From the sequence record MT366760.1: DNA of 64,000 nucleotides; one strand, given 5' to 3'. The notes under the pieces were generated by a model. It saw nothing but the letters and a program-made list of their open reading frames with translations. It ran no database searches and was not told the origin of the DNA. The position numbers and the translations under genes are program-made. Positions 4,692 through 55,422 of the stretch are shown here, piece by piece (position 1 is the first letter of the stretch; every line of letters starts with the position of its first letter).

Positions 4692-4909
4692 AACTTGTAC
4701 CTTGTTAGATGCCGTGTATTAATCAAACAGAACTCACCGTTAGGGTGTACTAATAAATCCATCATACCCGCCAGAGAGCTTACTTTGGATTCACTGTCCT
4801 TCTTCGCTTGTTCAATCATTCCAATTATTATCTCTTCGAGATCCTCCACGGGAAGCATCGAATTTTCCAGTTCTGGCATCAAGTGACTTAGATGTATTTT
4901 GTTTGCCAT
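4652..4909 (-). CDS. Hypothetical protein
   Basis: Start refined to MANKIHL. Confidence 0.55.
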   Translation of the reverse strand: MANKIHLSHLMPELENSMLPVEDLEEIIIGMIEQAKKDSESKVSSLAGMMDLLVHPNGEFCLINTRHLTRYKLCKNKMYKPVKNQ

Positions 4910-5981
4910 TTTTATTTTTCCTATACTTAGGGGATTCCTTACCAATATGCTTACTGCTAGTTTTATTAAGCTCCTGAAGCATTTTGATGAATTTTATTTT
5001 CATGTTTCCAGGGTCAACCTTTGCTGCTTTGACCGTAATACCTTTCTTATCAGCAATGCGTTTAGCTTCTTTATATAAGTTCATAACCATCACTTTACGT
5101 TCTGAACCCAAATCAGCTTTTAAATCACGTGTAGCACCGACGCCTGCAACGTCGCCGTCCATACATAAGACTATATCACAACCCAAGGACAGCAATAGTC
5201 GTTTCTTTTTCTCAGACCACGACTGTACACCCAACACGGCAACGGCAGGTATGCCATACTGTATTAAGCGTAATGCATCCCGTTGACCCTCAACGACAAC
5301 AACCCACTTATACTTCCCCTTCTTAAGCATGTTTCTAACTAAATCAAAAGGGAATAGACCCTTGGTACGCAGCGGACTATCATCAGATATCACATAACTA
5401 GGTGAACCAGACTTCTTTTCAAATCGAGCTTTGATAGCCGCAATAGTTTTACCCCTGACATCAACGGGCATTATAAGGAATGGACACTTCTCACGTCGGT
5501 CGATACCAACTTCACACTTGAGTTCCCTTATCAAGTCACCACTAATACCCCGCCATTCCTCATTGATGAACGGTAACGCCATTGGCATCTGCCATGTGTC
5601 CATATAATCTTGTAGCGAAGTACCCGACGTCGATAACAAAGACTTCTGGATTTTAGACATAGCATGTGATGAGAAACCTGCTGAATCACGCTTGTTCTCT
5701 TTTTGGTCAATCTTTTCTAAACCGTACTTTTCAGCGAGTACGTTCCATGGTGAGGAGTGACCACAACCTAAACAATAGACCCAACCAATAGGTGCCCTAC
5801 CATCTGGAGCAACATATATACCACAAGATGGTGACGAATCACCTGCGTGGAACGGGCATAATATCTCGATTGTCTTATACGTGTACTTTTTATACCCTGG
5901 AATCTTCTCTATTTCCTTGAGTATTTTTCGGTGTGCCTTACTGACACCTTCCGACACTTCATATACTTGTCGTGACATCAT
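4812..5981 (-). CDS. dnaG: DNA primase (CHC2 Zn finger + TOPRIM)
   Basis: ILCPFH...YCLGCG Zn finger; TOPRIM motifs VVVEGQRDAL and LCMDGDVAG. Start refined to MMSRQ. Confidence 0.9.
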   Translation of the reverse strand: MMSRQVYEVSEGVSKAHRKILKEIEKIPGYKKYTYKTIEILCPFHAGDSSPSCGIYVAPDGRAPIGWVYCLGCGHSSPWNVLAEKYGLEKIDQKENKRDSAGFSSHAMSKIQKSLLSTSGTSLQDYMDTWQMPMALPFINEEWRGISGDLIRELKCEVGIDRREKCPFLIMPVDVRGKTIAAIKARFEKKSGSPSYVISDDSPLRTKGLFPFDLVRNMLKKGKYKWVVVVEGQRDALRLIQYGIPAVAVLGVQSWSEKKKRLLLSLGCDIVLCMDGDVAGVGATRDLKADLGSERKVMVMNLYKEAKRIADKKGITVKAAKVDPGNMKIKFIKMLQELNKTSSKHIGKESPKYRKNKNGKQNTSKSLDARTGKFDASRGGSRRDNNWND

Positions 5982-7149: not shown

Positions 7150-7782
7150 ATGAATACTACCACTCAAGAAAATTCAAACGAGCGTAACGACCCGTTCAAA
7201 AATTGGGCTCCTGCGCAAGCAACACCAGAAGGCGAACGCCAACTGACTTTCCGCGAAGCCATTTCACGTAATCAAGGTAAAGCGGGTACAACAGACGGTC
7301 ACTACCGTCATAATATGTTTAACCGCACCGGTAAGATCTACCGTGCTACAAACTACCATTCTGCAATTGATGAGCACATGGAAGTTCAGACTTTCCTTAA
7401 CTCAATTGCAAACCGTCGCTTTAATACCTACTTCCATATGTTGAAGGGTACCGCGTCGCGTGGTCTACTCGTTAAAGACTGCATCCGCCTAGAGGCTCAC
7501 ATTGCTGTACGTCACGATGAGAAGGGTCGAATCATTCCGCCTAGCTATCGCGTAGTAGACTCCCTTGAAGTACGACTAATAGACAACCGTATTGTCCCTG
7601 TTGACGCTCAGGGTAACGAACTAACTAACAATCAAATGTTAGACCTATTCGTTACTAAATGCCGCAAGACTGATACACCAACTCAAGATGTAACTATTCA
7701 TCTTATGGGTCGCTGTACTGGCGTTGGTACTAAACAGCTTACATCAGGTGAAGCAACTGTAGAGGTTCGTATCAATGAATAG
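7150..7782 (+). CDS. Hypothetical protein
   Basis: 210-aa ORF with phage-like codon usage; promoter variant TGTAAAGTA at 7104. Confidence 0.7.
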   Translation: MNTTTQENSNERNDPFKNWAPAQATPEGERQLTFREAISRNQGKAGTTDGHYRHNMFNRTGKIYRATNYHSAIDEHMEVQTFLNSIANRRFNTYFHMLKGTASRGLLVKDCIRLEAHIAVRHDEKGRIIPPSYRVVDSLEVRLIDNRIVPVDAQGNELTNNQMLDLFVTKCRKTDTPTQDVTIHLMGRCTGVGTKQLTSGEATVEVRINE

Positions 7783-8293
7783 TGATCTACTAATCGGTTG
7801 GAAAGAAAACGGTGAAGTAACCATCGGTCTATTAAACCCACAAGAAGACTTGCTTACTATAGATATCTATAATCCAAAGGGTAAGTCAGTAACTGAAGTA
7901 GCGCAGGTAATTACGGGTTGGCTACTAGAATCAACAGACTTACTCAGCCACTACGGTCTAGACCAACACCTACAAGCATCCGTACCCAACACGGTGGAAT
8001 ACGACAAGTTAGTACCACCTACTGTTACAGGGTTCTATACTAATTTACCCCAAGCCTCTCAGATTGCTCAATCTGAAGAAGAACTACAACGTATGGCTAT
8101 CATTGTTATGCGTATGTTCTTTAAACGTTCCGAATTCGTGTGGGAAGGTCGCTGTACCAAATTCGCAGAAGCTGTATTCAACGCTGTATGCAGCGAAGTT
8201 AACTTTACCTATATCCCACGCGCTCTACAAATGATAGAGGGCACTGATAATGGCGAAGACAAAGAACAAAAGCAAAGCGAAGACAAATCGTAA
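7775..8293 (+). CDS. Hypothetical protein
   Basis: 172-aa coupled ORF. Confidence 0.7.
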   Translation: MNSDLLIGWKENGEVTIGLLNPQEDLLTIDIYNPKGKSVTEVAQVITGWLLESTDLLSHYGLDQHLQASVPNTVEYDKLVPPTVTGFYTNLPQASQIAQSEEELQRMAIIVMRMFFKRSEFVWEGRCTKFAEAVFNAVCSEVNFTYIPRALQMIEGTDNGEDKEQKQSEDKS

Positions 8294-8807
8294 GGCTATT
8301 ATAGTTGCCGGAGGTAGAAAGTTTGGCAACTATAAACTTGCTTGCAAAGAAATACGTAAGTTCGCTAAGAAACTAGGTGTACCCCTAGACAACCTAGAGA
8401 TAGTTTGTGGTATGGCTCTCGGTGCTGACAACATGGGTAGATGTTTCGCTATGGAGTTCTTAGATGGACGTGTAGTTGAAATGCCTGCTGATTGGAAGAA
8501 TCTAGATGCTAAACCCTGTTTAATTAAATACAACAAATATGAAGAACCCTACAATGCTCTAGCGGGTACTAATCGAAACGAGGACATGGCTAATGTCCCC
8601 AACGTTGTCGGATGTTTATGCTTCTGGGATGGTAAATCCCCAGGTACACAAGACATGATGACACGTGCTGTTAAACGTCGTAGGACTATGCAGCTTAAAG
8701 TCGTCTACTACGATAAGAAATTTAAAAAGTGCAAACCACCTAAGTCTGGTAAACCAAAGAAATCCCTTTTTTCCAAATCGGGTCGCTCCCAAAAACACAT
8801 AAGGTAA
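8250..8807 (+). CDS. SLOG/YspA-like (DUF2493) protein
   Basis: IIVAGGRKF, IVCGMALGAD, ADW..., GTNRNEDM and FWDGKSPGT motifs. Confidence 0.85.
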   Translation: MAKTKNKSKAKTNRKAIIVAGGRKFGNYKLACKEIRKFAKKLGVPLDNLEIVCGMALGADNMGRCFAMEFLDGRVVEMPADWKNLDAKPCLIKYNKYEEPYNALAGTNRNEDMANVPNVVGCLCFWDGKSPGTQDMMTRAVKRRRTMQLKVVYYDKKFKKCKPPKSGKPKKSLFSKSGRSQKHIR

Positions 8808-8811
8808 CACC

Positions 8812-9147
8812 ATGGAACAACATCTAACTACACCGCAAGAAGTAACATGTCCTGAATTAGAAGGTCATCCACGTGCCTCTGAAATTAAACGTGCAGTATT
8901 TATTTCGGCAGCGGACATCACCAATACTCCAGAAGACGAATTAACTTTCGCTCACGAGACTCATAACTACACCAATGATAACCTAGACCTTAACTTCGAC
9001 AGCCTTGATACTGTAGAATTCATTATGGCTCTAGAAGAAGAATTAGATGTAGATATCGCGGATGCCGATGTAGATCGTATGCTGAACGAAGGTGGTTCGC
9101 TAACGCTTGCTAAATGGTGTTCTTACCTAACCACACTGCTCGACTAA
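8812..9147 (+). CDS. acpP: Acyl carrier protein
   Basis: DLNFDSLDTVEFIMALEEELDVDIAD matches the ACP phosphopantetheine-Ser motif (DSL) and helix II; the protein is acidic. Confidence 0.85.
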   Translation: MEQHLTTPQEVTCPELEGHPRASEIKRAVFISAADITNTPEDELTFAHETHNYTNDNLDLNFDSLDTVEFIMALEEELDVDIADADVDRMLNEGGSLTLAKWCSYLTTLLD

Positions 9148-9150
9148 CAT

Positions 9151-10161
9151 ATGAAGTTTGAACGTCACGATTACCTGATTGTAAAAGATGAGAAAGACCG
9201 CAAGCATCTAATTCAAGTCACGGGTAATTCAAAAGCAGAAGTAACTGGCGCACTAGAAAAGTCGCGCCACATCGAAGGTAAAGAAACTGAGTACATGACA
9301 GTTGCCGTTGAAGACGTAATTATCAATCTGGGTAATAAACCCTATGTTGGTATGGTCTATGGTTGTCGGGTAAACCCGTTACAAAACCAACTATCCTGTA
9401 ACTTAGGTGACATCTATATCTACCGTGATAACGTTAAGAAGAAAGAGAAAAAGGCACTAGTTAAAGCAATTAATAGCGCACAAGCCGTCTTGAAGAATCT
9501 AGGTCTACACCACTTTCAGGAAGAACTACGTTTTGAAGTTCATCCCCAAAAAGGTAAATACGTTGGTTGGTATACGGTGTTCTCAGCTAAGTCTGAACGT
9601 TTTGATATGGTGACTCTTAAACCACACACCTTTGACCACCGTGAACTAATGAGTATACTCTATCATGAATTCGGTCATGGTCTAGAACATCACTTGTTCA
9701 CCCCTGAGTTAACTGAAGCTTGGATTAAGCTTTACCATTCTTTCACTACGGTGACGATGGCTACTAAGAAACAAGTGGAAGAAGCCCGTAAAACAGTAAT
9801 TGAACAGGGCTCACACGGATTGGCTCAACAAGTGATGGAAGAGTTTGAGTCATCACTAATTGATGTCTGTGTTGGTTACATTGCTGAGAACCATTACATT
9901 GACCCTAATCGTCTCGAAATATTAATTGAGCAGGGTCATGACTTAGTTGGTTTATGGCCTGAAACACCAATGCCAGTTACTTCAATTCAGAGTCCTATCG
10001 GTGAATACTCGGAAACTAACCCGTCCGAGTTTTTCTGTGAAGCACTTCGTATCCATCTTGATGGTAGTGTTAAACTACCTAAGAAGATTAATAAACTCCT
10101 AACTAAAACACTTAATCAATTACGTGGTCGTAAACCACAAGTTGAAGAAGACGAGGAATAA
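9151..10161 (+). CDS. Zincin metallopeptidase (lethal-factor-like HEXXH...E)
   Basis: LYHEFGH plus downstream YSETNPSEFFCEAL. Confidence 0.7.
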   Translation: MKFERHDYLIVKDEKDRKHLIQVTGNSKAEVTGALEKSRHIEGKETEYMTVAVEDVIINLGNKPYVGMVYGCRVNPLQNQLSCNLGDIYIYRDNVKKKEKKALVKAINSAQAVLKNLGLHHFQEELRFEVHPQKGKYVGWYTVFSAKSERFDMVTLKPHTFDHRELMSILYHEFGHGLEHHLFTPELTEAWIKLYHSFTTVTMATKKQVEEARKTVIEQGSHGLAQQVMEEFESSLIDVCVGYIAENHYIDPNRLEILIEQGHDLVGLWPETPMPVTSIQSPIGEYSETNPSEFFCEALRIHLDGSVKLPKKINKLLTKTLNQLRGRKPQVEEDEE

Positions 10162-11123: not shown

Positions 11124-11212
11124 TGTAAATAGTTGGTATGAACGCTAGCCGAGGACGGATGAATGTTCTCGGCTTTTCTAATTTTAATAACCCGATAACT
11201 GAGGGAGCACTC

Positions 11213-12829
11213 ATGGCACGTAAAAAGAGTAGCACTCCGCAACCTGGTGAATACAACTTAGTTCCCGCAGGATTGTTTAGTGTTAACCATAGCGGGATGG
11301 GGTTGTATGTTCGTTACTGTAAGAACCCTAACCGTATTGATGTTGTAGAGATGTCGCCACGACACGTTTATATCAAGTGTCCTGACCGAGACCTCTATTT
11401 GGTCAGTGCTGCACACCACGCATCACACCTACGACCATCAGCAGGTACATACGATAAGTATGTTAACCTTAGCCTATTCCACGATCTCAACGCTGTAGAC
11501 CACGACATCCCTTACTACATGGTGAATTATACTCAGTCACTAGGTAAAGAAGACAAGTCCCATGGGAACCGCAGACTAGACCCACGACCAATCGGGGAAA
11601 AACAAAGCAAAATTATTTCGGACTCAGGCGGCTTCCAAATTCTAATGGGACGCACCGAATACATTGACCCTCTGCAGATCATCCAATGGTATAACGAAAA
11701 CGTTGATGTCGGTCTAATTCTCGATATCCCAACATTCGTTAACAAGGATGGGTTACTCGACCGTCTAGCACGTATCCAACAAAAGAATACCCAAATCATG
11801 TTGGACAACAAACGTGACACCCTTGAACTAATGAACATCTTCCATGGACACACACCGGAGGATGTACGTAAATTCCGTGAAATAACTGAACACCCTGACA
11901 TCAACCGACTAGCGTTTGGTGCATCTTACTTGGATACCGTTATGTCTAGTCTTGGTAAGATTGCTGAAATGATGCACACGGGTAAGAAGTATGACCAGTA
12001 CCACATGTTGGGCGTTGCAAACCTGAAGCAAGTATACCCACTTATCTACATGGCTAAGAAGGGATTCGCTCCAGAAATATCTAGTGATGCTTCCACATGG
12101 CTACAGGAATCTACTTCAAAAGGCTACTACCACCAAGAGCACATTTCGGAACCACCTGGCTTCATTAAAATGTTCGACAAGGTAAATGCACCATCACCCT
12201 ATAATACACTACCATGTAATTGTCCTGTGTGTAGCAACATTAAATACACAGATGCACTATCAGTGATTAATGGTAACGTGACAACATTCCTCATGGCTCA
12301 CCATAACATGTATGCCTACAATAATGTCGTGCAAGCGATGAAAGGTATCATGGCGGAAGCATCCCTTAAGGAAATTAAGGAACTCGTTGCACGCCAATTC
12401 AGAACACGTAGTGGTAAGGATGAAGCACTCAAATCATTCGACTTTATCGAATCTATTTCTGAACATGGTGTTGATTCCTCGTACAAGAAGTTCGGCTACT
12501 ACTTGAACTCTATGAAGAGTAACATGTCTAGTAACAAGACACTCTTCGGTAAGGAGGAAGAGGATGTTGGTGAAAACGGTATCGTTCAGATTGCTGATGA
12601 CGACCCACGCCTGATTCGCACACTTGAAGTATGTGATATTTACGAAGGTAAAACTGAGCGTAAACATGGTGCTAAAAATGCCAACGCGAAGAAAACGGGA
12701 CACTTGAAAGCTAGCTCTGGTGCTAAGGGAACGGCGGGTAAACGTAAGAAACCTAAAAAGGTAAAGGCGAAAGCTAAAGACACTAAGAAGGTGACTACCA
12801 ATGCCAAAGCAAAGAGTACGAAAAAGTAA
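11213..12829 (+). CDS. tRNA-guanine transglycosylase-like / DpdA-like base-exchange enzyme
   Basis: DSGGFQ (catalytic Asp), LILDIP, YHMLGV, SSDAS (second Asp) and Zn site CNCPVC...HHN; basic C-terminal tail. Start refined to ATG 11213 (RBS GGGAG). Confidence 0.88.
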   Translation: MARKKSSTPQPGEYNLVPAGLFSVNHSGMGLYVRYCKNPNRIDVVEMSPRHVYIKCPDRDLYLVSAAHHASHLRPSAGTYDKYVNLSLFHDLNAVDHDIPYYMVNYTQSLGKEDKSHGNRRLDPRPIGEKQSKIISDSGGFQILMGRTEYIDPLQIIQWYNENVDVGLILDIPTFVNKDGLLDRLARIQQKNTQIMLDNKRDTLELMNIFHGHTPEDVRKFREITEHPDINRLAFGASYLDTVMSSLGKIAEMMHTGKKYDQYHMLGVANLKQVYPLIYMAKKGFAPEISSDASTWLQESTSKGYYHQEHISEPPGFIKMFDKVNAPSPYNTLPCNCPVCSNIKYTDALSVINGNVTTFLMAHHNMYAYNNVVQAMKGIMAEASLKEIKELVARQFRTRSGKDEALKSFDFIESISEHGVDSSYKKFGYYLNSMKSNMSSNKTLFGKEEEDVGENGIVQIADDDPRLIRTLEVCDIYEGKTERKHGAKNANAKKTGHLKASSGAKGTAGKRKKPKKVKAKAKDTKKVTTNAKAKSTKK

Positions 12830-13265
12830 AAACCAAAAATCAGACGAGGGTTTGAGTGTTGCTAAACTAATACAGACCACTCGTCGATTCCGATACTTAG
12901 ACGCATCATCAAGGGACGTTCGCTTATACCGACCACTTCGTATGAAGGGCGAGAACGGGGTACGCATTGAGGCTTCAGCTAAATCGCGTATTTCGAAGCA
13001 AAATAGAAACCCACAAGTACACAGATGCTCTATGGAATGTATTAATGGCTATGACCGCTTAACACATAAGAAAGCACGCGTTAAGGTTTCTTGTGATTGT
13101 GAGTTCTTTACATACACATGTGAGGTCGCACTATATCGCTATGGAGCTGCTGATATCATCTTTAGTAATGGTGAATACCCGTACTCCACAAACCCCCGTG
13201 GTTTACCTATTATGTGTAAGCACCTTTTATCCATGGCTAAAGCTATTCAGAAGAAAGGGTTCTGA
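12801..13265 (+). CDS. SWIM-type zinc-finger protein
   Basis: VSCDCEFF...MCKHL (CxC...CxH). Confidence 0.65.
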   Translation: MPKQRVRKSKNQKSDEGLSVAKLIQTTRRFRYLDASSRDVRLYRPLRMKGENGVRIEASAKSRISKQNRNPQVHRCSMECINGYDRLTHKKARVKVSCDCEFFTYTCEVALYRYGAADIIFSNGEYPYSTNPRGLPIMCKHLLSMAKAIQKKGF

Positions 13266-13270
13266 TTATT

Positions 13271-14218
13271 GTGTCAGACTCTATGAGCTACCTAAAGGCT
13301 AACGACCCCAATGAGATGCAGTTGTCATCTAATCAGATATTCACATTGTTTGACGACCTGATTTATCGAGCAGTAGACTGCCTGATTGATAACTGCGACT
13401 TCGTTGACAAATCATTAGCCTCAGTATTATCTTGGTATAACGCCAACAAGAGAAGACGTTTAAGTAGATTAGTCCGACAAGAAGCTGTCAGCTTAATGAT
13501 GAGCTACCTGATAACACCCGACCGCGAACTTAAGAAAGAAATACTCCGCGAGTTGATGTTAGAAAGGGGTTTAATGTTAGCTATACTAGAACAGTTCCTT
13601 GTAGTAACTAAGAACTACCAAACGTGTGTCCACCGAACAATAAATTTTAACTCTCGTTACTATAATTCGGTGTCCCAAGAACGCAGGTCTATTGAGAGAC
13701 AAGTCGGTGTTCTAAAGGATGGGAACTTGTATTGCGCAATCAACACTATTGACCTGTGGCATTCTACAGCTATAGATATGCGTAATAGGATAATGCGTAA
13801 ACACACTAGATACATCTTTAGTAAAGTTCGTTCAGAAGGTAATCGGGCAACCACGCCTATAGACTTGAATGACATGGCTCAGAATTATGTAGTCGCACTA
13901 CTCAAGGCTATCTATAAATACTTACCTGAACGTGGTACTTTCCAATCGTACCTTGAATACTGGTTACTTGATGCTAAGACCAACAGTGGTTCCAAACACT
14001 ATTATGGTTTAGCCTTTGATGTGCCCAGTATGGAAACTTTAGAAAAGAATTCACTCTCAAATTTATCTATCCCTCTATCAGCAGAAGAAGTTCAGATGGT
14101 GTCTACTCATGGCGTCGAACAGGAAGTTTGCGATAACTCGCATATCCTTAGAATCCGTGAGTTAGCTTTATACGCAGATCCACTTGGATATGCACGTGAA
14201 GCGTTAAACATCGACTAA
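13271..14218 (+). CDS. Phage RNA polymerase sigma factor (sigma70-like region 2)
   Basis: DLNDMAQNYVVALLKAIYKYLPERGTFQSYLEYWL resembles sigma regions 2.2-2.4. Confidence 0.75.
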   Translation: MSDSMSYLKANDPNEMQLSSNQIFTLFDDLIYRAVDCLIDNCDFVDKSLASVLSWYNANKRRRLSRLVRQEAVSLMMSYLITPDRELKKEILRELMLERGLMLAILEQFLVVTKNYQTCVHRTINFNSRYYNSVSQERRSIERQVGVLKDGNLYCAINTIDLWHSTAIDMRNRIMRKHTRYIFSKVRSEGNRATTPIDLNDMAQNYVVALLKAIYKYLPERGTFQSYLEYWLLDAKTNSGSKHYYGLAFDVPSMETLEKNSLSNLSIPLSAEEVQMVSTHGVEQEVCDNSHILRIRELALYADPLGYAREALNID

Positions 14219-14270
14219 TGTTTCTGTAAATAAATATCACAACACAAGCTAAACTCAATTGGAGAATAAC

Positions 14271-15266
14271 ATGGCTGAAAGAAAACGTGGCTTTGGCGGT
14301 TTAAAGACTGGAGGCGACAAAGCTAAACGTCTAGAAGATCAGGTAGAAATGTTGACACTGCCGAAGGACGGTTCGTGGGTTACAGTTCGTATCATAGGTG
14401 ATGTTCATTCCACCGCTATCCGTTGGATTGACATCATTACCCAGAAAGGTCAGATCTCAATTCCTAAAGTAGCGCTGAACTACGATGCGGATACCGACGA
14501 CTTCGATTCAACAATTGAAGATCCGTACGAAGAAATTTCTAACCCTCAACGTTTAAGTACAACGCACTACGTTAACGTTCTAGTTCGTGATCTTGAAGAC
14601 ACTGAACCTAAGAAGAACAAACCAACATCAGGTGAGAAAAAGTCGGGTTTCAAAGACAAGAACTCTAAGTCGTGGACGCCAATTCGTGTACTACGTGTTC
14701 CTAAAGGTCTTGCGGGTAAACTGGCTAGTCTTATCGCCCTTAACAAGCACAAGACTAAGAAAGGTACTGAAGCATTCGAACTATCCGACATCGAGTATGG
14801 TTGTGATGTTCACGTATCCTTCGACGATAGTAAGTCGCCTAGTGAGAAGTACTCAGTTCAAAAAGCAGAACATACTCCGCTGTCTAAAGCTGAACAGAAA
14901 CTACTAGTATGGGACATCGCAACCAATCTAACCCCACCTGAATCATTGGAAGTAGCTCGTAAAGAAGCTGAAAACTTGGAAGGTAAAGCTCCAATGGACG
15001 AAGAAGACGACGGTGACGAAGACGATTTCGATGTCAAAGACAAAAAGAAAAAGTCTAAAAAGTCTAAGAAAGACGATGATAAGAAGTCTAAAGACAAAAA
15101 GTCTAAGGGTAAGAAAGACTTCGATATCGACGACGATTTCAAAGACGATAAAAAGTCTAAAAAGTCTAAGAAAGACGACAAAGCTAAGTCTAAGAAAGAT
15201 GACGGTAAAAAGTCTAAGAAAGACGACAAAGCTAAATCTAAAGACAAAAAGAAAAAGAAGAAGTAA
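14271..15266 (+). CDS. Single-stranded DNA-binding protein (T4 gp32-like) with K/D/S-rich tail
   Basis: VTVRIIG, HYVNVLVRD and GCDVHVSFD...YSV fold pattern; lies upstream of the recombinase; low-complexity tail. Confidence 0.7.
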   Translation: MAERKRGFGGLKTGGDKAKRLEDQVEMLTLPKDGSWVTVRIIGDVHSTAIRWIDIITQKGQISIPKVALNYDADTDDFDSTIEDPYEEISNPQRLSTTHYVNVLVRDLEDTEPKKNKPTSGEKKSGFKDKNSKSWTPIRVLRVPKGLAGKLASLIALNKHKTKKGTEAFELSDIEYGCDVHVSFDDSKSPSEKYSVQKAEHTPLSKAEQKLLVWDIATNLTPPESLEVARKEAENLEGKAPMDEEDDGDEDDFDVKDKKKKSKKSKKDDDKKSKDKKSKGKKDFDIDDDFKDDKKSKKSKKDDKAKSKKDDGKKSKKDDKAKSKDKKKKKK

Positions 15267-16308: not shown

Positions 16309-17820
16309 ATGGCACCTAAAAAGAAACCGGCAGGTAAAGCCGTGGACACTGAAGAAAAGCCAAAGAAAACTCCTAAGAAAGCAACGGCAGCAAAGAAAAC
16401 GTCGCCAAGTAAATCAGCCTTAGCAGTATCCGAAGCACTTCAAGACACTTACGACTTACTTGGTGTGTCTAGCCTGTTAGACGATATGGAACGCGAGTTT
16501 AAATTGGCGTCGTCCTCGACTGATACGGATGCACGCTCATCCACATGTGTATCATCTGGTCTACTTATGACTGACTTAATGTTGGCAGGCGGTATCTATG
16601 GTGGTGGTTGGTACACAATACTCGGTCCTGAGGGCTCATGTAAAACTACTCACCTAATGTGTTGGTTAGAACAGTTGTTTATGTCAGATATCCCAATCAT
16701 TCAGCATTGGGATTACGAAGGTTCTACAACACCTGACTATATGCAGTCTATCCTAGAAGGTCGTGGTTCTAAACTTGACGTTAAACGTCTATTCGGTTTA
16801 CGAGATCCCGACCATCCAGAGAAATGGGCAGTTGAACCCCGTATCCGTTACTATCCCGAATCAGAAGGTGAGCGTTTCTACAAAGCAGTTGGTAACCTGC
16901 TTAAACGTCTACCAGACAAACTATGTATCAATGGTATCTGGTACTTAGGGTTCGAACGTACCAAACAAAACATCTCACGACTAAAAGGTAAGTACGATAC
17001 TAAACTTAGCACTAAGTATGGTCGCCTAATGGTGGAGTCACCTAATGGTGGTCAGATGCAAGCACTATTCATCCTTGATTCGTTCCCTGCTATGACTGCC
17101 GAAATCGACGATGAAGGTGAAGGCTCTAACGGTCTAGCACTTGATGCACGTATGCATTCTAAGCACTACAAGAAAGTACGTTCCAAACTGAAACGTAAGA
17201 ATGCTACATTGGTCGGTGTTAACCAAGTCCGTCTAAACCCAGGTGCTCGCTTCGGTAACCCTGAATATGAGCCGTGTGGTAACGCGATTAAACACGCATC
17301 TGATGCTCGTATTCGTCAAGCTCCTCGTGCAATTCCACACGGAACGGGTAGCATCGAAGAAGAAGACTCATGTCTAATCGAAGGTGGTACTGACCAATAC
17401 AAATACATCCATATGCGTGCTGTTAAGAACAAGCTTGGTGTAGACAACCTAGAAGTTTGGCACCGTCTATGGATGGTTGATGGTGAGGGTAAAGGTCGTG
17501 GTATTGACCCCGTGTGGGACACATTCCAGTACCTTAAGTCAACAGGTCAGTGTGACGGTACTATGAAGAAGATGAACATCACGCTTCATGACGGCTCATT
17601 CGAGATATCTAAACTTTCATGGTTCGACTTCAAGTGTCTAGTACTTCTAACTGGCGCTGATCTACGCGCTCATTGTGAAGAACTTGGTATCGACAAAAAT
17701 CCTAAACTTCGTGAGAAGTGTTTCAAGCAGATTGCTTCCGGTGACGGTATGAAACACTACTTCAACACCCTGAATGGCGCGTTGTACGACGAAGAAGAGG
17801 AAGACGAAGACGACCTCTAG
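16309..17820 (+). CDS. recA: RecA/UvsX-like recombinase
   Basis: Walker A GPEGSCKTT, Walker B FILDSFPA, VGVNQVR and GNAIKHASDARI motifs. Confidence 0.92.
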   Translation: MAPKKKPAGKAVDTEEKPKKTPKKATAAKKTSPSKSALAVSEALQDTYDLLGVSSLLDDMEREFKLASSSTDTDARSSTCVSSGLLMTDLMLAGGIYGGGWYTILGPEGSCKTTHLMCWLEQLFMSDIPIIQHWDYEGSTTPDYMQSILEGRGSKLDVKRLFGLRDPDHPEKWAVEPRIRYYPESEGERFYKAVGNLLKRLPDKLCINGIWYLGFERTKQNISRLKGKYDTKLSTKYGRLMVESPNGGQMQALFILDSFPAMTAEIDDEGEGSNGLALDARMHSKHYKKVRSKLKRKNATLVGVNQVRLNPGARFGNPEYEPCGNAIKHASDARIRQAPRAIPHGTGSIEEEDSCLIEGGTDQYKYIHMRAVKNKLGVDNLEVWHRLWMVDGEGKGRGIDPVWDTFQYLKSTGQCDGTMKKMNITLHDGSFEISKLSWFDFKCLVLLTGADLRAHCEELGIDKNPKLREKCFKQIASGDGMKHYFNTLNGALYDEEEEDEDDL

Positions 17821-25900: not shown

Positions 25901-28690
25901 GACAAGGGTACCATAAAAGTTAAAGATCACTCATTGACGTCACCTTACGAAATAAACTTTGGCTCTGATAACATCACACTTACAGACTTCACTATTGATG
26001 GTCGTGGTACCTTCATTATAACCAGTGACTTAGTAATCAGTAAGTTTACGGGTAAGAACTACGACGGTATATTCCCTTCCGGTAAATTCCGTGGGTCATC
26101 AACTGATTTCTTAGTGGTACGTGACTACGAAGGTATTGGTTCATTTAAAGATCACACACTATGGCGACGAAACAAGATACAGTGGTACAACTCAGTTAAT
26201 GGTTCTAACATAAAAGTACTGGGTAAAGAAACATCTAGTAGCACACAACATACAGGAATATCTGAATTCTGGTCGGAGATAAAGATCCATGTGACCGACC
26301 CCGACAACAACGACCAAGAAAATGTTCGTGTGGCTCTAAAAGATTATGATGATTCAAATAGGACTGATACTTCATCCCTTACGGGTTCCGCATCCTCAGG
26401 GCATTATAACACTGGTTTTGATTATACACCGGATAGGACGTATACTGAAGTAACCGACGTCGAGGGGCTAACACCTATTATCCCCGTGTTATTCGCAGTG
26501 GTAGACAGGTCAGTGGGTGGTGCACAAGCTACACCTACTTCAGATTGGTCATACCGTTCTAAGAACGGTGATAACTCTGATGAATTCGAAGTCTTTGTAT
26601 GGCAATATGGTAAGAACGTTGCGACATCTGTAATATCATTAAAAGGAGCGGGGGTAAAAGAAACTAAGTTAGTTACAACAACGGATATTAACGTAACAGA
26701 AACCGACAAATCAGTTGTCTCCGCCTACACGGGTATAGGTATTGACCACACAACCAAAACAATAACCATTTCTGCACAACGAACGTTGGCAGAGATATAC
26801 GATTATTTGCTTTATGACAAGACAACTATATCGGGTGTATACCATCCTACGTTGGGTACTAAAGTAGCAGGTATAGTTGGTGCAACAATTGACATCAAAG
26901 ACTACAATCTTATAGTTGATGGTGCAGACATAGTTGCGGGTTCAACAGGTTTTAACCTGTTGCAAACAACTGGTTTAATAACACTACAGAATACTGCAAC
27001 GATTGACTTCAACTTCCTAGATCAAATAGGTAACGCGATAGTAACTATTGATTTACCCGCCAACTGGAACTTAGAAGGTGTATATCCTAGTCAAAATGAT
27101 GCACTGGCAAAAACCAACAAGTTGCCAAATTCGAACATCAACTATAAGTATCTTACAACATCCGAGGGTGGTAACACTATTTGGATGAGGATAGAGGACT
27201 CCGATGGTCAGGGTATAGCAGTTGATTCCTACGAGTTGCCTATAACCCGAGGTGTGTATGAAACCGCCGCCGTTACTTCAACCGAAGATAGTTTATTAAA
27301 CCAGATTCGTGCGATAGTTCGTGATACTAAAACCATTACGGAAGATATACAATCCGAAACTGGAGGGGGTCTATCACAAAATTACTTCGATGACTTCCAA
27401 AAGAGAAGTGGTTACAACTTAGCAACTGTTGAAGAAGCTATTAACGTGGACTTTTCTGGTAACTTGGCTGCCTATGTCAACATGGGTTTCCGTTGTCCAG
27501 TAGGTAAGAAAGGTGGTAGCTTAGTACCCCGCCGCGGTACTGCTATATCTAAGGTACGTTTCTATGTGGGACAGGCCTTCCACATAGGTACGAACACTTA
27601 TATGGGTGGTACTGTTCAATTCAAAATATGGCGAACCAATGGCCCTGGTACACTAGCCGACGGTAACTTCGGGGATGTCGTGTGGCAGTCGCCAGAAACT
27701 TATCAGTTAGACGACCTGGAAAACGTCGGCTCTAATTCAGTAGTCGGATCTGGCTACAACCACGTCCACCGTTCTAAAGAATTCATCATGGAATCTTCCG
27801 GTATGATTCTAGAAGAAGACTATTACTTTGGTTTTGAAGTCATCACGGGTGAAGCGCTAACACCGATAAACCTGAGTGATTCAGGTCATGACTACGGGGG
27901 TTTATACTATGAACACCATAGATTGAGTGGTTGGGAGTCTAATAGCCCTGGTTACATACGGTACGCCGACGGTGGTAGACCTGTACCCGTGGATATAACG
28001 GAATACAACTACAACTTGATAACTCAGTATAAGCTTAAGGCAGACATCGACGACATTAAGGACGTAACGGATAAAGTATCATTCAACGCAGACAACGACA
28101 TTATAGCAACTCTTGATAATGAACTCACAGATATCATGGATGTATCTAAACGCGCACCCTACGTTTATGTGGATGGATGCCCGACAGCAGAAGCCAACGG
28201 TGCATACAGATTATTGTCCACGGATGAAGTTGATTGGCTGAACGCTAATGGTAACTTAGATTCTGATATTGCGGCAGGTGACACTGCTGTTTTAGATAGG
28301 TCACAACCCGTATATGGATTAGACCGGAATGAATGGGTGTTGGGTGCAATGGAAGGTGAATACGGTTATAGACTATTCCCTGTACAAAACACAACTACCT
28401 ATTATTCTTCCAATAACGGTTTCTACGACCTAGCACAGGAAGTTTCTGGTGACCCCACCGTTGGTAAATCATGGTATGCCTTAGCAGGGAAATTCGACGC
28501 TGACAATTTAGTTGATGGTGCTAAAGTTTCCATAATGGTTGTACTTAATACACCTACTATGTTGGATGACGTTAAAGACAGAACTGACCAACTACAATTC
28601 ACAGATCAACGGGTTGACGCTAATGTACCAGATCAACTTACTGAATCAGAGTTTGATACAAAACGACTGGCTAAGAAAGGGTGGCGCTAA
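22916..28690 (+). CDS. Giant (1924 aa) virion fibre/adhesin-like protein with internal repeats
   Basis: T/S/G/N-rich and beta-rich. Three copies of ETDS.VVAAYTGI.I.H..KTIT....W....IYDY; C-terminal domain shared with the 30872 ORF. Confidence 0.75.
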   Translation: MPVNYTSGELRLSGTVTNAEFYAATSTAGLSRNTENQYELGANMRVMSGADVSGLKNFILALNTYEIYSEDPSIVFNQITFIESEGRTTADRVVFKTAGSGKNPILNDCQFLHNIVGNPGGGDPRYLTMAHIGGASNSVFRASDFSEQEIDGVQLMESGVYRNISGIRVKRFIASLDPDDNAIRVILKDLKQSSKLYGTGGLICAYSGSSVMVVNWDKEILNSGATNNWLDNYNGHLSAHWVYILGSAADEYQNNGAGISQKKNTLHVVKGGYKYYKFINGEGGTFCYFDSRGSSPQACSPTTTRSDMLETDTTLSIPADEEIDFVTQTLTYNRDTGSWVQTNITGHRFLVRKYGYLEISQDLDNPEAVEGSPEAYSPFLMGLDDSIGEVDSTVVAAYTGITINSSAKTITITSGSWTPQKIYDYCKYWLTQNMDVGNFVTASGTNYEYTYRWVLNGSANLQHDPDTHKVTFKDIDIGISPLHLIAGSYVYGVETVSDGVTTYSSREGLVNDVSLGSTHGFNATYRESGCPKIDGGTFTWNGGIITTPTALSVEDGQLLLRKGELDVSSYDSSNSIGPTLWLESAADTLQFENLIVTSNSAREGLIVLFSKEPNTFDNVTMLNGGGLGFGGSTLFETDGTTAKIIEIKNYEATGGQGAARFWRRNYLKLINYNLGSDIEISGMLTAGNSENRGIIDIYREVDFHVTDATATNIEGANVYCIDTDDGNRPANYMGHSWTADKEYLRSTDSTGRTSTIEVNLANMVKTGNNSATTGIVRSYRGLDGDTSDKFKFYFYHYNYLIANTVGTLGGKGILTLQQTMQEDPAITETDSTIVAAYTGIAIDHSAKTITLTSGTWTSNVIYDYVKYNKCLSANVSKPSVLESAIEFSEGRFISRYRILVKHTALFDIGSGHPLTFTSDVATPNLSGEGSITFGSETTVNGITSYDSGTLVNFEKNNTSWYQNPVMVLDGTLVWKGGELEVQSPLITSPDLSMVVDKGTIKVKDHSLTSPYEINFGSDNITLTDFTIDGRGTFIITSDLVISKFTGKNYDGIFPSGKFRGSSTDFLVVRDYEGIGSFKDHTLWRRNKIQWYNSVNGSNIKVLGKETSSSTQHTGISEFWSEIKIHVTDPDNNDQENVRVALKDYDDSNRTDTSSLTGSASSGHYNTGFDYTPDRTYTEVTDVEGLTPIIPVLFAVVDRSVGGAQATPTSDWSYRSKNGDNSDEFEVFVWQYGKNVATSVISLKGAGVKETKLVTTTDINVTETDKSVVSAYTGIGIDHTTKTITISAQRTLAEIYDYLLYDKTTISGVYHPTLGTKVAGIVGATIDIKDYNLIVDGADIVAGSTGFNLLQTTGLITLQNTATIDFNFLDQIGNAIVTIDLPANWNLEGVYPSQNDALAKTNKLPNSNINYKYLTTSEGGNTIWMRIEDSDGQGIAVDSYELPITRGVYETAAVTSTEDSLLNQIRAIVRDTKTITEDIQSETGGGLSQNYFDDFQKRSGYNLATVEEAINVDFSGNLAAYVNMGFRCPVGKKGGSLVPRRGTAISKVRFYVGQAFHIGTNTYMGGTVQFKIWRTNGPGTLADGNFGDVVWQSPETYQLDDLENVGSNSVVGSGYNHVHRSKEFIMESSGMILEEDYYFGFEVITGEALTPINLSDSGHDYGGLYYEHHRLSGWESNSPGYIRYADGGRPVPVDITEYNYNLITQYKLKADIDDIKDVTDKVSFNADNDIIATLDNELTDIMDVSKRAPYVYVDGCPTAEANGAYRLLSTDEVDWLNANGNLDSDIAAGDTAVLDRSQPVYGLDRNEWVLGAMEGEYGYRLFPVQNTTTYYSSNNGFYDLAQEVSGDPTVGKSWYALAGKFDADNLVDGAKVSIMVVLNTPTMLDDVKDRTDQLQFTDQRVDANVPDQLTESEFDTKRLAKKGWR

Positions 28691-54186: not shown

Positions 54187-54231
54187 AACAGTGATGATAC
54201 TATTATCTTTTAATTAACTAGGAGAAACACA

Positions 54232-55422
54232 ATGCGATTACTTAACTTACGCGACAAGGTAGTCATCTACCATGCAGGGTGCTTAGACGGTATGGGTGCA
54301 GCAGCTACCTTTCAGCACTGGCTGCTAAAACGTTTGGAGATTCAATCAGGTTGCGACAAGACTTTTGTCCATCACGTTACACACGCTCAACTCGATGAGA
54401 GAACTGCTGCTCACGTTATTCAATATGGTGTGAAACATTCTGAGCGTGCTAGCCTGAGCCAGTCCCAATTCACATTGGATGTTGCATATGTACCTGCTGT
54501 CTACGGTAAGGACTATTCTGACTTAAATCAGATGGGTGCTAACGAAATTGAAGACTCCCTGCACGTTGCTTACCATGAGAAGGACGTATACATCGTTGAC
54601 TTCTCATTGCCTATCGAACAGCTTGTTAAGATTGCTGCGGTCGCTAACTCCGTAACTGTTCTTGACCACCATCATACTGCATTTGAAATGTACAAGGACT
54701 GGTCACCCGAAGAGATGCCATACAACGTTAACATCGAACTAGAATACGCTCGTTCTGGTGCAACACAAACGTGGTGGTATCTAATGGGTAACGAAGATTA
54801 CCCAATGCCTATCCGTCACGTAGAAGACCGCGACTTATGGAAGTGGCAGGTTGACGGTACAAAAGAATTCACACTTGCCATCTACAACGGTGATGACTCG
54901 TTTATGAAGAGTGTCGTCGGTTGGCAACGTCTGTTATCTTTCCAACCCGCGACGTGTGAAGCTAACTATAACGCTCTAATCGATAAGGGTCGCATCTTCA
55001 AAGAGTACCAAGACGTTTCGATTAAGAAGCATATGAAGTATGTACGCTTCGTCAAACTAGCAGGCGGTATGTACAACGTCCCTGTAGTTAACGTCACTCG
55101 TGACATCACCAGTGAGATTCTTGAACAGATTATCATTGAACATAAAGCACCATTCGCAATTGCATTCATAGATGGTCCTGATGAACGTTGGTGGTCGTTG
55201 CGTTCTAAGTTCCTACCTGATGGTAACCCAGACTTCCCTAATGCGGTTGACGTTAGTGAGATTGGTAAAATCATGGGTGGTGGTGGTCACCAAGCAGCAA
55301 GCGGTTTCTCAACGCCACACTACGTAGCACCAGAAGAACTAGACCGATGGGCTAACACTGTACTCATGCAGCAACAGCAGAAAGCCGAAGAACACTCACA
55401 ATGTCAATGTGGAGATCACTAA
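54232..55422 (+). CDS. DHH/DHHA1 phosphoesterase
   Basis: YHAGCLDG, IVDFS, LDHH, VEDRDLW, SLRS and GGGGHQAASGF motifs. Confidence 0.9.
   Translation: MRLLNLRDKVVIYHAGCLDGMGAAATFQHWLLKRLEIQSGCDKTFVHHVTHAQLDERTAAHVIQYGVKHSERASLSQSQFTLDVAYVPAVYGKDYSDLNQMGANEIEDSLHVAYHEKDVYIVDFSLPIEQLVKIAAVANSVTVLDHHHTAFEMYKDWSPEEMPYNVNIELEYARSGATQTWWYLMGNEDYPMPIRHVEDRDLWKWQVDGTKEFTLAIYNGDDSFMKSVVGWQRLLSFQPATCEANYNALIDKGRIFKEYQDVSIKKHMKYVRFVKLAGGMYNVPVVNVTRDITSEILEQIIIEHKAPFAIAFIDGPDERWWSLRSKFLPDGNPDFPNAVDVSEIGKIMGGGGHQAASGFSTPHYVAPEELDRWANTVLMQQQQKAEEHSQCQCGDH

Follow-up and report, generated by a model that had tools for sequence, protein, structure and literature searches.

The gene GR7B_00174 of Vibrio phage vB_VcorM_GR7B probably encodes an enzyme that is functionally a DpdA, which swaps guanine in phage DNA for a 7-deazaguanine that the phage makes itself; we place the probability of this reading at about 0.75. 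The substrate is most likely DNA and the inserted base most likely preQ0, which is then probably matured to dG+ in the DNA. This reading is built on how the protein folds and which of its residues are conserved, on the genes that the genome carries, on the linkage of related genes to que genes in other phages, and on profile homology to the DpdA2 enzymes. Modification of DNA with 7-deazaguanines is an established defence of phages against restriction, with DpdA regarded as its signature enzyme.

The window, that is, the whole stretch of DNA that was analysed, is the last 64 kb of the 207,758-bp genome of this jumbo phage (MT366760.1), and all coordinates below are window positions unless stated otherwise. 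The gene is identical (100% match) to positions 154971-156587 of the record, where its product is named 'TGT domain-containing protein'. The open reading frame runs from 11138 to 12829 on the plus strand, with two candidate ATG codons at 11138 and 11213. The second is the true start, since it is preceded by a Shine-Dalgarno-like sequence, and since the extra stretch of the longer frame contains a terminator-like hairpin, placed between the upstream gene and the TGT-like gene. The GenBank start is also at 11213. The hairpin is used as supporting evidence only, because the number of such matches in the region is not above that in shuffled sequences.

11213..12829, plus strand: TGT-superfamily (DpdA-like) gene, GR7B_00174 / QJT70972.1, 538 aa by translation of the open reading frame
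11201..11207, plus strand: GAGGGAG, a Shine-Dalgarno-like sequence lying 5 nt upstream of the start codon at 11213, read from the sequence
11147..11184, plus strand: terminator-like hairpin (11147-11174, 11-bp stem with 6 GC pairs) followed by a T-rich tail, from a consensus scan

As judged by its predicted structure and its sequence, GR7B_00174 is a protein of the TGT-superfamily fold, with three active-site Asp residues and a predicted CxCxxC...H zinc site. The AF2 model has a mean pLDDT of 85.6 and a pTM of 0.84. In a Foldseek search of the PDB, the top folds were ArcTGT and TGTs (probability 1.00, E ~1e-10, TM (target) ~0.6); nothing informative came from searching the PDB with just the barrel region (residues 120-300). 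The protein is organised as follows.

11213..11512, plus strand: N-terminal beta-rich domain, approximately residues 1-100, in which DSSP assigns five strands to the stretch from residue 13 to residue 65 of the AF2 model
11513..12202, plus strand: catalytic TIM-barrel core with D137 (DSGGFQ), D171 (LDIP), H211-G212, H264-x-L266-G267 and D292 (SSDAS), all in invariant or near-invariant columns
12215..12304, plus strand: predicted zinc site C335-x-C337-xx-C340...H364 (CxCx2Cx23H) in the translation, aligning with the ArcTGT/TGT zinc motif
12275..12643, plus strand: C-terminal helical domain with helices 355-431 and 465-477 and a disordered linker 434-456 (AF2 secondary structure and pLDDT)
12647..12826, plus strand: disordered Lys-rich tail, residues 479-538, with 21 K and 2 R and a net charge of +21 in the final 60 residues

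The N-terminal beta domain precedes the barrel and exceeds the lid region that aligns with ArcTGT: the ArcTGT alignment starts at profile position 84, and that with DpdA2 of Vibrio phage nt-1 starts only at residue 62 of GR7B_00174. In the translation, DSGGFQ occupies residues 137-142 and SSDAS residues 290-294, and the motifs of the barrel core match those of ArcTGT and nt-1 DpdA2 one by one in the alignments. The C-terminal region matched no Pfam domain, PUA included, in a search with E up to 1. The tail contrasts sharply in charge with residues 1-478, which carry a net charge of -5, and its disorder is predicted by pLDDT values below 50 at residues 496-535.

Conservation was examined in 159 representatives of the family, clustered at 50% identity. 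D171 and D292 are kept in all 159 and D137 in 157; the counts for G212 and H264 likewise fall in the range 157-159. Each of the three Cys of the predicted zinc site is found in 154 representatives and H364 in 157. Overall, none of the catalytic and zinc residues is present in fewer than 153 of the 159, and thus the motifs are not chance matches. Position 211, where GR7B_00174 has a residue that aligns with the His of the FHG motif of DpdA2 and the FHAG motif of DpdA1, is a His in 153 representatives and a Gln in the remaining 6. The basic tail is also a family-wide feature (the last 50 residues have a median net charge of +10, and 121 of 159 representatives reach at least +5), although it is the composition that is conserved, and not the sequence. 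An earlier note on this DNA, made from the window alone, had proposed a TGT/DpdA-type base-exchange enzyme with conserved Asp motifs and zinc site, and a long Lys-rich tail. Both descriptions hold, the motifs and the zinc site being kept in 154-159 of the representatives.

The genome outside the window encodes a set of deazaguanine proteins. Firstly, there are FolE (Pfam, 178.6 bits), a QueD-like protein with 35% identity to the tandem-type QueD of nt-1, a QueE-like protein (E 3.6e-10 against QueE of phage 9g), and QueC (TIGR00364, 185 bits, over the cut-off). Secondly, there are an ArcS-like protein (DUF5591, 28.2 bits, over the gathering score; NF040592, 44 bits) and, besides QueC itself, a further QueC-like protein. 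No QueF homologue was found in the genome; neither was a second TGT-superfamily open reading frame in its 207,758 bp, nor any match to DpdA1, DpdA2 or DpdA3. The statement in the earlier note that que genes are absent is therefore true for the window but not for the genome. The accompanying idea that the phage may use preQ0 or preQ1 of the host arose because only the window was visible to that reader, and it is not borne out, given that the phage has its own FolE, QueD-like, QueE-like, QueC and ArcS-like proteins. The que genes of GR7B are dispersed, 50-130 kb away from the TGT-like gene, so linkage within this genome amounts to co-occurrence only.

Physical linkage is encountered in the relatives. 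In 80 IMG/VR loci with related genes, FolE is encoded within 10 kb in 39-40, QueE in 17-18, and QueC in 9, and in 20 of the 34 closest loci one or more que genes fall inside this distance. The gene immediately upstream of the TGT-like gene encodes FolE in four loci (L027, L028, L029 and L034), and in another (L035) the genes for the TGT-like protein, ArcS-like protein, QueC, QueE and FolE are consecutive. The background is low: among 50,697 phage records, QueC is present in 336 and a QueE-like protein in 250. The relatives GR11A, nine P. putida phages and phage NCTB also carry QueE-like and QueD-like genes. For NCTB, a 2019 catalogue lists FolE, QueD, QueE and QueC, and no DpdA. A PSI-BLAST search from nt-1 DpdA2 in 2019 missed the NCTB member of the present family, and the main text of Hutinet 2023 (PMC10516641) does not mention NCTB. 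NCTB does encode a homologue of GR7B_00174, which fills the transglycosylase gap of its preQ0 pathway.

A functional precedent is DpdA2. Work in E. coli has validated the DpdA2 enzymes of Vibrio phages nt-1 and VH7D as 7-deazaguanine transglycosylases of DNA (Hutinet 2019, 2023), and DpdA2 enzymes take more than one base (Hutinet 2023, PMC10516641). By profile comparison, the barrel of GR7B_00174 is homologous over residues 117-296 to that of DpdA2 from nt-1 (YP_008125322; hhalign probability 97.5%, E 5.6e-12; 50.6 bits) and from VH7D (YP_009006086; hhalign probability 97.6%, E 4.8e-12), and the motifs DSGG, LD-IP, FHG, H-x-LG and SxDSST are aligned with nt-1 DpdA2. The genomic setting is also similar: the DpdA2 phages are, like GR7B, large Vibrio phages with FolE, a tandem-type QueD, QueE and QueC, and nt-1 has an ArcS-type protein in addition. 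There are clear differences, however. DpdA2 proteins (~460 aa) are without the CxCxxC zinc motif that the GR7B_00174 family keeps, and they are missing the first ~60 residues of its N-terminal domain. The nt-1 DpdA2 gene lies inside a que cluster, in contrast to the dispersed genes of GR7B. Pairwise phmmer searches between DpdA2 and GR7B_00174 gave no match in either direction.

Similarity to the other DpdA types is weak or absent. DpdA1 of phage 9g reached an hhalign probability of 11-15% (E 2-3e-3), and was not matched by phmmer or hmmsearch. For DpdA3 of the phiST/CP220 type (phiST gp042, 259 aa), the hhalign probability was 0.6-3.8% and the Foldseek E value 5e-3. No match to DUF6610 (PF20314), which represents DpdA4 of the HVTV-1 type, was found by Pfam at E up to 1. 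Bacterial DpdA has a CxCx2Cx22H zinc site and a His181 at the base-recognition position, is devoid of the beta-sheet lid of TGT, and requires the ATPase DpdB (Gedara et al. 2023, PMC10164549). GR7B_00174 shares with the Salmonella Montevideo enzyme (PDB 7UI4) the TIM-barrel TGT fold, the three invariant Asp and the pattern of a structural zinc site, in which the spacing is CxCx2Cx23H rather than CxCx2Cx22H. In sequence, the two resemble each other only weakly (18.8-19.4 bits, E 3-5e-3), and 7UI4 is outside the top 50 Foldseek matches. The low scores to bacterial DpdA (19 bits), DpdA1 and DpdA3, and the N-terminal beta strands of GR7B_00174 as opposed to the lid-less bacterial enzyme, are observations that run counter to a DpdA assignment. 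The zinc site is neutral in this respect: the earlier note had taken it as a sign of closeness to tRNA TGTs, but, as it is present in bacterial DpdA (PMC10164549), it cannot separate DNA from tRNA enzymes.

One member of the family has been considered before. Iyer et al. 2021 (PMC7824862) predicted computationally a DNA-incorporating deazaguanine transglycosylase in Achromobacter phage Motura. This transglycosylase belongs, as a distant member, to the family of GR7B_00174 (tblastn 25% identity, E 1e-20; BFVD TM 0.70/0.78), and Motura is likewise a jumbo phage, in which QueC, QueE and FolE adjoin the gene (L033). No assignment of the Motura transglycosylase to DpdA1-4 was found in the literature examined. 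Taken as profile comparisons, these data support the view that the family forms a clade apart from the named DpdA subfamilies, which the earlier note had raised as a possibility.

A pathway can be proposed from these homologies. FolE, the QueD-like and QueE-like proteins and QueC would convert GTP to preQ0, and GR7B_00174 would exchange guanine for preQ0 in phage DNA after replication. The exchange would follow double-displacement chemistry as in TGT and DpdA, with D292 as the nucleophile and D137 as the general acid/base; D171 and H211 would read the base, and the zinc site would have a structural role. By analogy with the DpdA2 and ArcS2 pair of nt-1, some or all of the dPreQ0 would then probably be turned into dG+ (archaeosine) by the ArcS-like protein. 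The disordered poly-Lys tail, to judge from its composition, most likely confers sequence-independent affinity for DNA. Phage DNA modified in this way would be expected to withstand restriction by the host.

Alternatively, the enzyme might act on DNA, with a base or a final modification other than preQ0 or dG+, either CDG or a new derivative made with the help of the QueC-like and ArcS-like proteins, and possibly of a KamA-like aminomutase and a GNAT encoded nearby. QueC and the divergent QueC-like protein are encoded as a tandem pair in GR7B, and the same pair recurs in two of the related loci (L024 and L025). The ArcS-like protein retains the PC-x3-KPY core and scores nearer to archaeal ArcS than to nt-1 ArcS2. 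Genes for a KamA-family radical SAM protein and a GNAT are found four genes away in the same minus-strand block, and in L022 a distance of 7 kb separates a KamA homologue and the TGT-like gene. The acceptance of more than one base by DpdA2 enzymes points the same way. However, KamA and GNAT need no link to DNA, since such a pair is also typical of the acetyl-beta-lysine osmolyte pathway; no domain was recognised in any of the three intervening genes, and KamA occurs near the TGT-like gene in just 1 of the 80 loci. Furthermore, a canonical QueC is present, which makes preQ0 the default product. This alternative is thus considered unlikely. A bolder version of it, which we regard as similarly doubtful, would make GR7B_00174 the founding member of a DpdA-type clade, the sixth, which retains zinc, ends in a histone-like tail and is distributed across jumbo phages. 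In phages like GR7B, the enzyme would act together with the ArcS-like protein, the QueC/QueC-like pair, and perhaps the KamA-like and GNAT proteins to install a deazaguanine hypermodification new to DNA (e.g., an amino-acid-derived amidine or amide). If this were true, the tail might allow a large share of guanines to be modified.

The comparison with tRNA enzymes was made with profile scores on a common scale instead of a classical TGT/DpdA phylogeny, which was judged unreliable because identities are only 10-15%. The alignment of the family profile with ArcTGT takes in the entire catalytic domain (58.3 bits, E 4.7e-15), and by profile score the family is approximately equidistant from archaeal ArcTGT and phage DpdA2. 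ArcTGT of Pyrococcus horikoshii (PDB 1IQ8, 1J2B) is the best single match in both sequence and fold (Foldseek E 1.5e-10), sharing the aligned motifs DSG-FQ, LDIP, H-x-FG, DS-SY and PCSCPVC. It uses preQ0 upstream of an ArcS-type enzyme, and the same is predicted for GR7B_00174. The two nevertheless have only ~15% identity, with a TIGR00432 score of 41.8 bits against a cut-off of 350. The C-terminal tRNA-binding domains of ArcTGT, PUA included, are missing from GR7B_00174, a Gln of ArcTGT aligns with H211, and ArcTGT is without the basic disordered tail and the phage genome context of GR7B_00174. The bacterial and eukaryotic tRNA TGTs for queuine or preQ1 (e.g., from Zymomonas mobilis) are more remote: the fold (TM (target) ~0.6) and the region of the zinc motif are shared, but scores are only 20-25 bits, mainly from the zinc region, and identity is 12-14%. 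Curated tRNA-TGT cut-offs were missed for PF01702 (24.1 versus 26.3 bits) and TIGR00449 (21.9 versus 47.6), and the bacterial tgt equivalog was not matched.

An ArcTGT-like tRNA-guanine transglycosylase that, with the ArcS-like protein, places preQ0/archaeosine or a queuosine precursor in host tRNAs and so tunes translation during infection would be in keeping with several of these observations. The nearest solved structures and the top single sequence match are tRNA enzymes, which speaks against action on DNA, as does the fact that ArcTGT and ArcS form the archaeal tRNA archaeosine pair. The zinc site and the N-terminal beta region are kept, and the 6 representatives with Gln at position 211 have the residue typical of TGT. 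On the other hand, the His at this position in the other 153 representatives, the large distance to the curated tRNA models, the lack of a PUA or other tRNA-binding C-terminal domain in the protein, and the profile homology to DpdA2 all argue against a tRNA enzyme. GR7B has no ordinary tRNA gene in 208 kb according to ARAGORN, which weakens the phage tRNA modifier that the earlier note had kept as an alternative. Moreover, all phages so far tested that have a que pathway and a TGT homologue modify their DNA (Hutinet 2019, 2023). A tRNA substrate is thus quite unlikely, and the preference of the earlier note for DNA is supported as the more likely case.

Finally, it is very unlikely that the protein is a TGT-derived DNA-binding protein or glycosylase that exchanges no base (e.g., one with a role in base excision only or in anti-defence), because, even though its long basic tail and its additional N- and C-terminal domains are dispensable for TGT chemistry, the double-displacement and base-recognition residues are essentially invariant, across relatives the gene is in tight linkage with those for deazaguanine synthesis, and the genome has no other candidate enzyme for the phage-made base.

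The clade is large: 611 cluster representatives of the representative library match at a threshold of E 1e-3, and 126 still do so at 1e-30. Its members were seen in phage and metagenome sequence only; a search of 185,579 species genomes with the single protein, which detects close relatives only, returned none. The clade would account for NCTB, and thus for one phage or more in which the preQ0 pathway was catalogued as complete and a transglycosylase as missing. Its recognition would sharpen the prediction of modified guanine in the genomes of jumbo phages, which is relevant to sequencing, cloning and restriction mapping. In sequence, the family takes a position intermediate between ArcTGT of archaea and DpdA2 of phages, which has no zinc motif, and this is informative on how tRNA enzymes were recruited to DNA. 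The general picture is unchanged, as this type of system is known, and a relative, in Motura, was predicted to do the same in 2021.

Annotation resources contribute little: the only match in PHROGs is weak and of unknown function (phrog_10773, E 7.7e-5), PADLOC reported nothing relevant and no DpdA match, and literature searches on GR7B, the vB_PpuM phages and 'DpdA5' gave nothing relevant. The longer homologues are not informative domain fusions, since the extra sequence in two of them (P0153 and P0098) is an intein or homing endonuclease, and no additional Pfam domain is present in the rest.

The earlier note had placed the gene in a 'replication block'. This is roughly right, the neighbours being a primase gene (4812-5978, minus strand), a peptidase-like gene, a sigma-factor-like gene (13271-14218), an SSB-like gene (14259-15266) and RecA/UvsX (16309-17820). 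The gene immediately downstream was considered as an enzyme partner.

12801..13265, plus strand: gene for a 154-aa protein with a CxC...CxH (SWIM-like) motif, phrog_18980, overlapping the 3' end of the TGT-like gene by 29 nt

This candidate was rejected, as the SWIM-like protein stays with the sigma-like gene when the genes are separated, which is the case in five of the related loci (L019, L021, L023, L026 and L033).

The gene GR7B_00174, labelled 'TGT domain-containing protein' in GenBank, is best described as encoding a predicted DpdA-type DNA transglycosylase, which would belong to an unnamed zinc-retaining, basic-tailed clade typical of a jumbo-phage lineage and act alongside a preQ0/archaeosine pathway that the phage itself encodes. 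Both the existing GenBank label and a comparative study from 2021 (Iyer et al., PMC7824862) already pointed to the same assignment. The earlier note had favoured base exchange on DNA; its observations stand, and its interpretation is supported in part.

The ORF is 100% identical to MT366760.1, the record of phage vB_VcorM_GR7B (207,758 bp; host Vibrio coralliilyticus RE98), and window positions equal record positions minus 143,758, which makes the window the final 64 kb of the record. The ORF as listed is 11138-12829 (+). A start at 11213 is better than 11138, given the two elements below and the homologue alignments, which begin around residue 10 of the 538-aa form.

Features near the start of the TGT-like gene (window positions)
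11147-11174: terminator-like hairpin with an 11-bp stem, inside the extra 5' stretch of the longer ORF
11201-11207: Shine-Dalgarno sequence GAGGGAG, ahead of the 11213 start

All the motifs named in the earlier note are found in the translation: DSGGFQ (137-142), SSDAS (290-294), C335-x-C337-xx-C340 and H364. The Lys-rich tail is likewise present, with 21 Lys and 2 Arg in the last 60 residues (net charge +21; -5 for the protein without them), and is predicted to be disordered in the AF2 model. Across the family the composition of this tail is conserved and its sequence is not; the last 50 residues have a median net charge of +10, and at least +5 in 121 of 159 representatives.

The TGT signal in curated models is only marginal: the match to Pfam PF01702, at 24.1 bits, falls short of the gathering score (26.3), and the ArcTGT model TIGR00432, whose cut-off is 350 bits, reaches 41.8. 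A search of a 90%-clustered database found 44 full-length relatives, and an exhaustive search of representatives found 611 at E ≤1e-3 and 126 at E ≤1e-30. The named sources are only jumbo phages (195-258 kb), namely GR11A (76% identity), nine Pseudomonas putida vB_PpuM phages (52%), Xanthomonas and Erwinia phages (37%), Phage NCTB (27%), and BCSR5 and Motura (about 25%). The AF2 model, for which the family alignment was the input, is confident (pLDDT 85.6, pTM 0.84) and consists of an N-terminal beta-rich region (strands 13-65), a TIM barrel, a zinc-site region and a C-terminal helical domain, with disordered stretches at 434-456 and 496-535. In Foldseek searches, the top PDB matches are ArcTGT and bacterial/eukaryotic TGTs (E ~1e-10, 12-15% identity). 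Among viral models, family members rank first, followed by nt-1 DpdA2 (E 6.7e-9) and, lower, by DpdA1-type proteins (1e-4 to 8e-3) and phiST DpdA3 (5e-3).

Inteins with a LAGLIDADG homing endonuclease occur in two metagenome homologues, P0153 (981 aa) and P0098 (796 aa); in P0153 the intein lies immediately before DSGGFQ. Inteins usually target strongly conserved sites of important DNA-metabolism proteins.

Placement relative to known subfamilies was examined with two family profiles.

Profile scores in bits, at a common database size of 177,635 (first profile, 43 sequences; broader profile, 31 sequences including IMG/VR)
ArcTGT: first 42.8; broader 58.3 (E 4.7e-15, a single alignment across the whole catalytic domain)
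nt-1 DpdA2: first 24.8; broader 50.6
VH7D DpdA2: first 24.6; broader 48.0
Bacterial TGTs: first ~22; broader ~24
Bacterial DpdA (7UI4): first 18.8; broader 19.4

Neither profile matched 9g DpdA1 or phiST DpdA3. The hhalign probabilities are 97.5% for nt-1 DpdA2, 97.6% for VH7D DpdA2, 11-15% for 9g DpdA1 and 0.6-3.8% for phiST DpdA3. Assignment to DpdA4 was ruled out, since a Pfam search found no DUF6610 match in the protein. The two DpdA2 proteins lack the CxCxxC motif that the TGT-like protein keeps, and their alignment to it begins only at residue 62. H211 lies opposite Gln in the ArcTGT alignment and opposite His in those of DpdA2 and DpdA1. On these comparisons the GR7B family behaves as a hub, combining ancestral TGT/ArcTGT features (the zinc site and the N-terminal beta region) with links to phage DNA enzymes.

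A second TGT-like family (IMG/VR loci L045-L090; ~500 aa) has no zinc motif and acidic C-terminal tails, and is often encoded within 10 kb of a FolE ~60-65% identical to that of GR7B. As it is related to the GR7B family (hhalign 99.7%) and weakly to nt-1 DpdA2 (36.7%), it may represent another unnamed phage transglycosylase lineage.

Conservation among 159 GR7B family representatives, each of at least 400 aa
D137: 157/159
D171, D292, G212 and H264: 159/159 each
H211: His in 153/159, Gln in the remaining 6
C335, C337 and C340: 154/159 each
H364: 157/159

In their account of TGT/bacterial DpdA chemistry, Gedara et al. (2023; PMC10164549) describe these residues as serving in general acid/base catalysis, base recognition, nucleophilic attack and structural zinc binding; members of the family are therefore predicted to be active enzymes.

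The earlier note had suggested use of host preQ0/preQ1. This is not borne out, as FolE, QueD-like, QueE-like and QueC proteins are encoded by the phage outside the window.

Deazaguanine genes elsewhere in the GR7B genome (record positions)
27226-28200: QueD-like, tandem T-fold (GR7B_00040); 35% identity to nt-1 QueD, E 2e-47
54211-54951: FolE (GR7B_00072); Pfam 178.6 bits
56564-57496: QueE-like radical SAM (GR7B_00075); 9g QueE match, phmmer E 3.6e-10
100500-101204, minus strand: divergent QueC-like (GR7B_00117); Pfam QueC 63.5 bits
101284-102090, minus strand: QueC (GR7B_00118); TIGR00364 185 bits, above cut-off
102102-103109, minus strand: ArcS-like, DUF5591 (GR7B_00119), with the PC-x3-KPY core retained; Pfam 28.2 bits, above gathering score; NF040592 44 bits

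No QueF homologue, no second TGT-superfamily ORF and no match to DpdA1, DpdA2 or DpdA3 was found across the genome. With these que genes and no other TGT-superfamily ORF, GR7B would therefore make preQ0 itself, and the TGT-like protein would be its only candidate user.

The tandem QueC pair beside the ArcS-like gene (record 100500-103109, minus strand; 7501-10110 of record stretch L010) recurs in IMG/VR loci L024 and L025. Four genes away in the same minus-strand block lies a KamA-family lysine 2,3-aminomutase-like radical SAM gene (record 94554-96187, minus strand; L010:1555-3188; TIGR03820 AblA 317 bits; TIGR00238 232 bits, above cut-off), with a GNAT acetyltransferase gene immediately after it. 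The two resemble an ablA/ablB pair for making acetyl-beta-lysine, here carried by a marine Vibrio phage. L022 also has a KamA homologue (49% identity), at a distance of 7 kb from its TGT-like gene. The GenBank record annotates a polyphosphate kinase (window 49312-51315 (-), record 193070-195073), an auxiliary metabolic function that is unusual in phages.

On homology and context, FolE, QueD-like, QueE-like and QueC would convert GTP to preQ0, which the TGT-like protein would exchange for G in duplex phage DNA, with D292 as nucleophile, D137 as acid/base, and D171 and H211 in base recognition. The ArcS-like enzyme would then convert dPreQ0 to dG+. Composition suggests that the tail could provide non-specific DNA affinity. 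It is tempting to speculate that the base inserted is not preQ0, or that a new hypermodification results, since GR7B has a tandem QueC-like gene, an ArcS-like protein of canonical appearance, and KamA-like and GNAT genes close by; the latter pair would also fit an osmolyte pathway, and such a modification is considered unlikely.

Modification of tRNA is less probable still. The nearest structures are tRNA enzymes, but the protein has no PUA domain, has His at position 211 and is homologous to DpdA2, and every phage tested sets a precedent against it. Moreover, ARAGORN found no ordinary tRNA gene in the genome; its sole call is a tRNA-like element whose two-base 'anticodon' is undefined (record ~111562-111646; 11562-11646 (+) of record stretch L004). 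A role without base exchange is very improbable given the invariant active site.

Association with que genes was also examined across relatives. QueE-like and tandem QueD-like genes are common to the carriers GR11A, the nine P. putida phages and NCTB, and phage Aura shares the GR7B order (QueE, three genes, FolE, one gene, helicase). Among 80 IMG/VR loci with TGT-like relatives, FolE lies within 10 kb in 39-40, QueE in 17-18, QueC in 9, QueD types in 9 and an ArcS-like gene in 1; at least one que gene does so in 20 of the 34 closest loci (L011-L044). Background frequencies are 336/50,697 phage records for QueC and 250/50,697 for QueE-like genes. FolE is immediately upstream in L027, L028, L029 and L034, and L035 has the order TGT-like, ArcS-like, QueC, QueE, FolE.

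Phage NCTB was listed with FolE, QueD, QueE and QueC and no DpdA/DpdA2 (Hutinet et al. 2019, PMC6884629), a gap that its homologue of the TGT-like protein would fill. Every deazaguanine phage was later said to have a DpdA of subfamily 1-4, in a paper whose main text does not include NCTB and which reports that nt-1 DpdA2 with ArcS2 yields dG+ in E. coli (Hutinet et al. 2023, PMC10516641). For Motura and other jumbo phages, a system for making deazaguanine and a transglycosylase that incorporates it into DNA had already been described (PMC7824862); the Motura transglycosylase is a distant GR7B family member.

The conserved local order is peptidase-like, TGT-like, 154-aa protein, sigma-like.

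Neighbouring genes (window positions)
9151-10161 (+): conserved peptidase-like protein, phrog_17197 (183 bits), HEFGH metalloprotease motif; 13 related loci have it upstream of the TGT-like gene
12801-13265 (+): 154-aa protein, phrog_18980 (unknown function); 29-nt overlap with the TGT-like gene
14259-15266 (+): SSB-like protein, phrog_15004

The 154-aa protein has no Pfam match and a CxC...CxH SWIM-like motif spotted by eye. Its gene occurs in 21 of the 80 loci and, because it adjoins the sigma-like gene even where the TGT-like gene is distant, its product may work together with the phage sigma factor. The last ~100 residues of the SSB-like protein form an extreme Lys/Asp/Ser-rich low-complexity tail; after the TGT-like protein, it is the second in the block to have a disordered, highly charged terminus.
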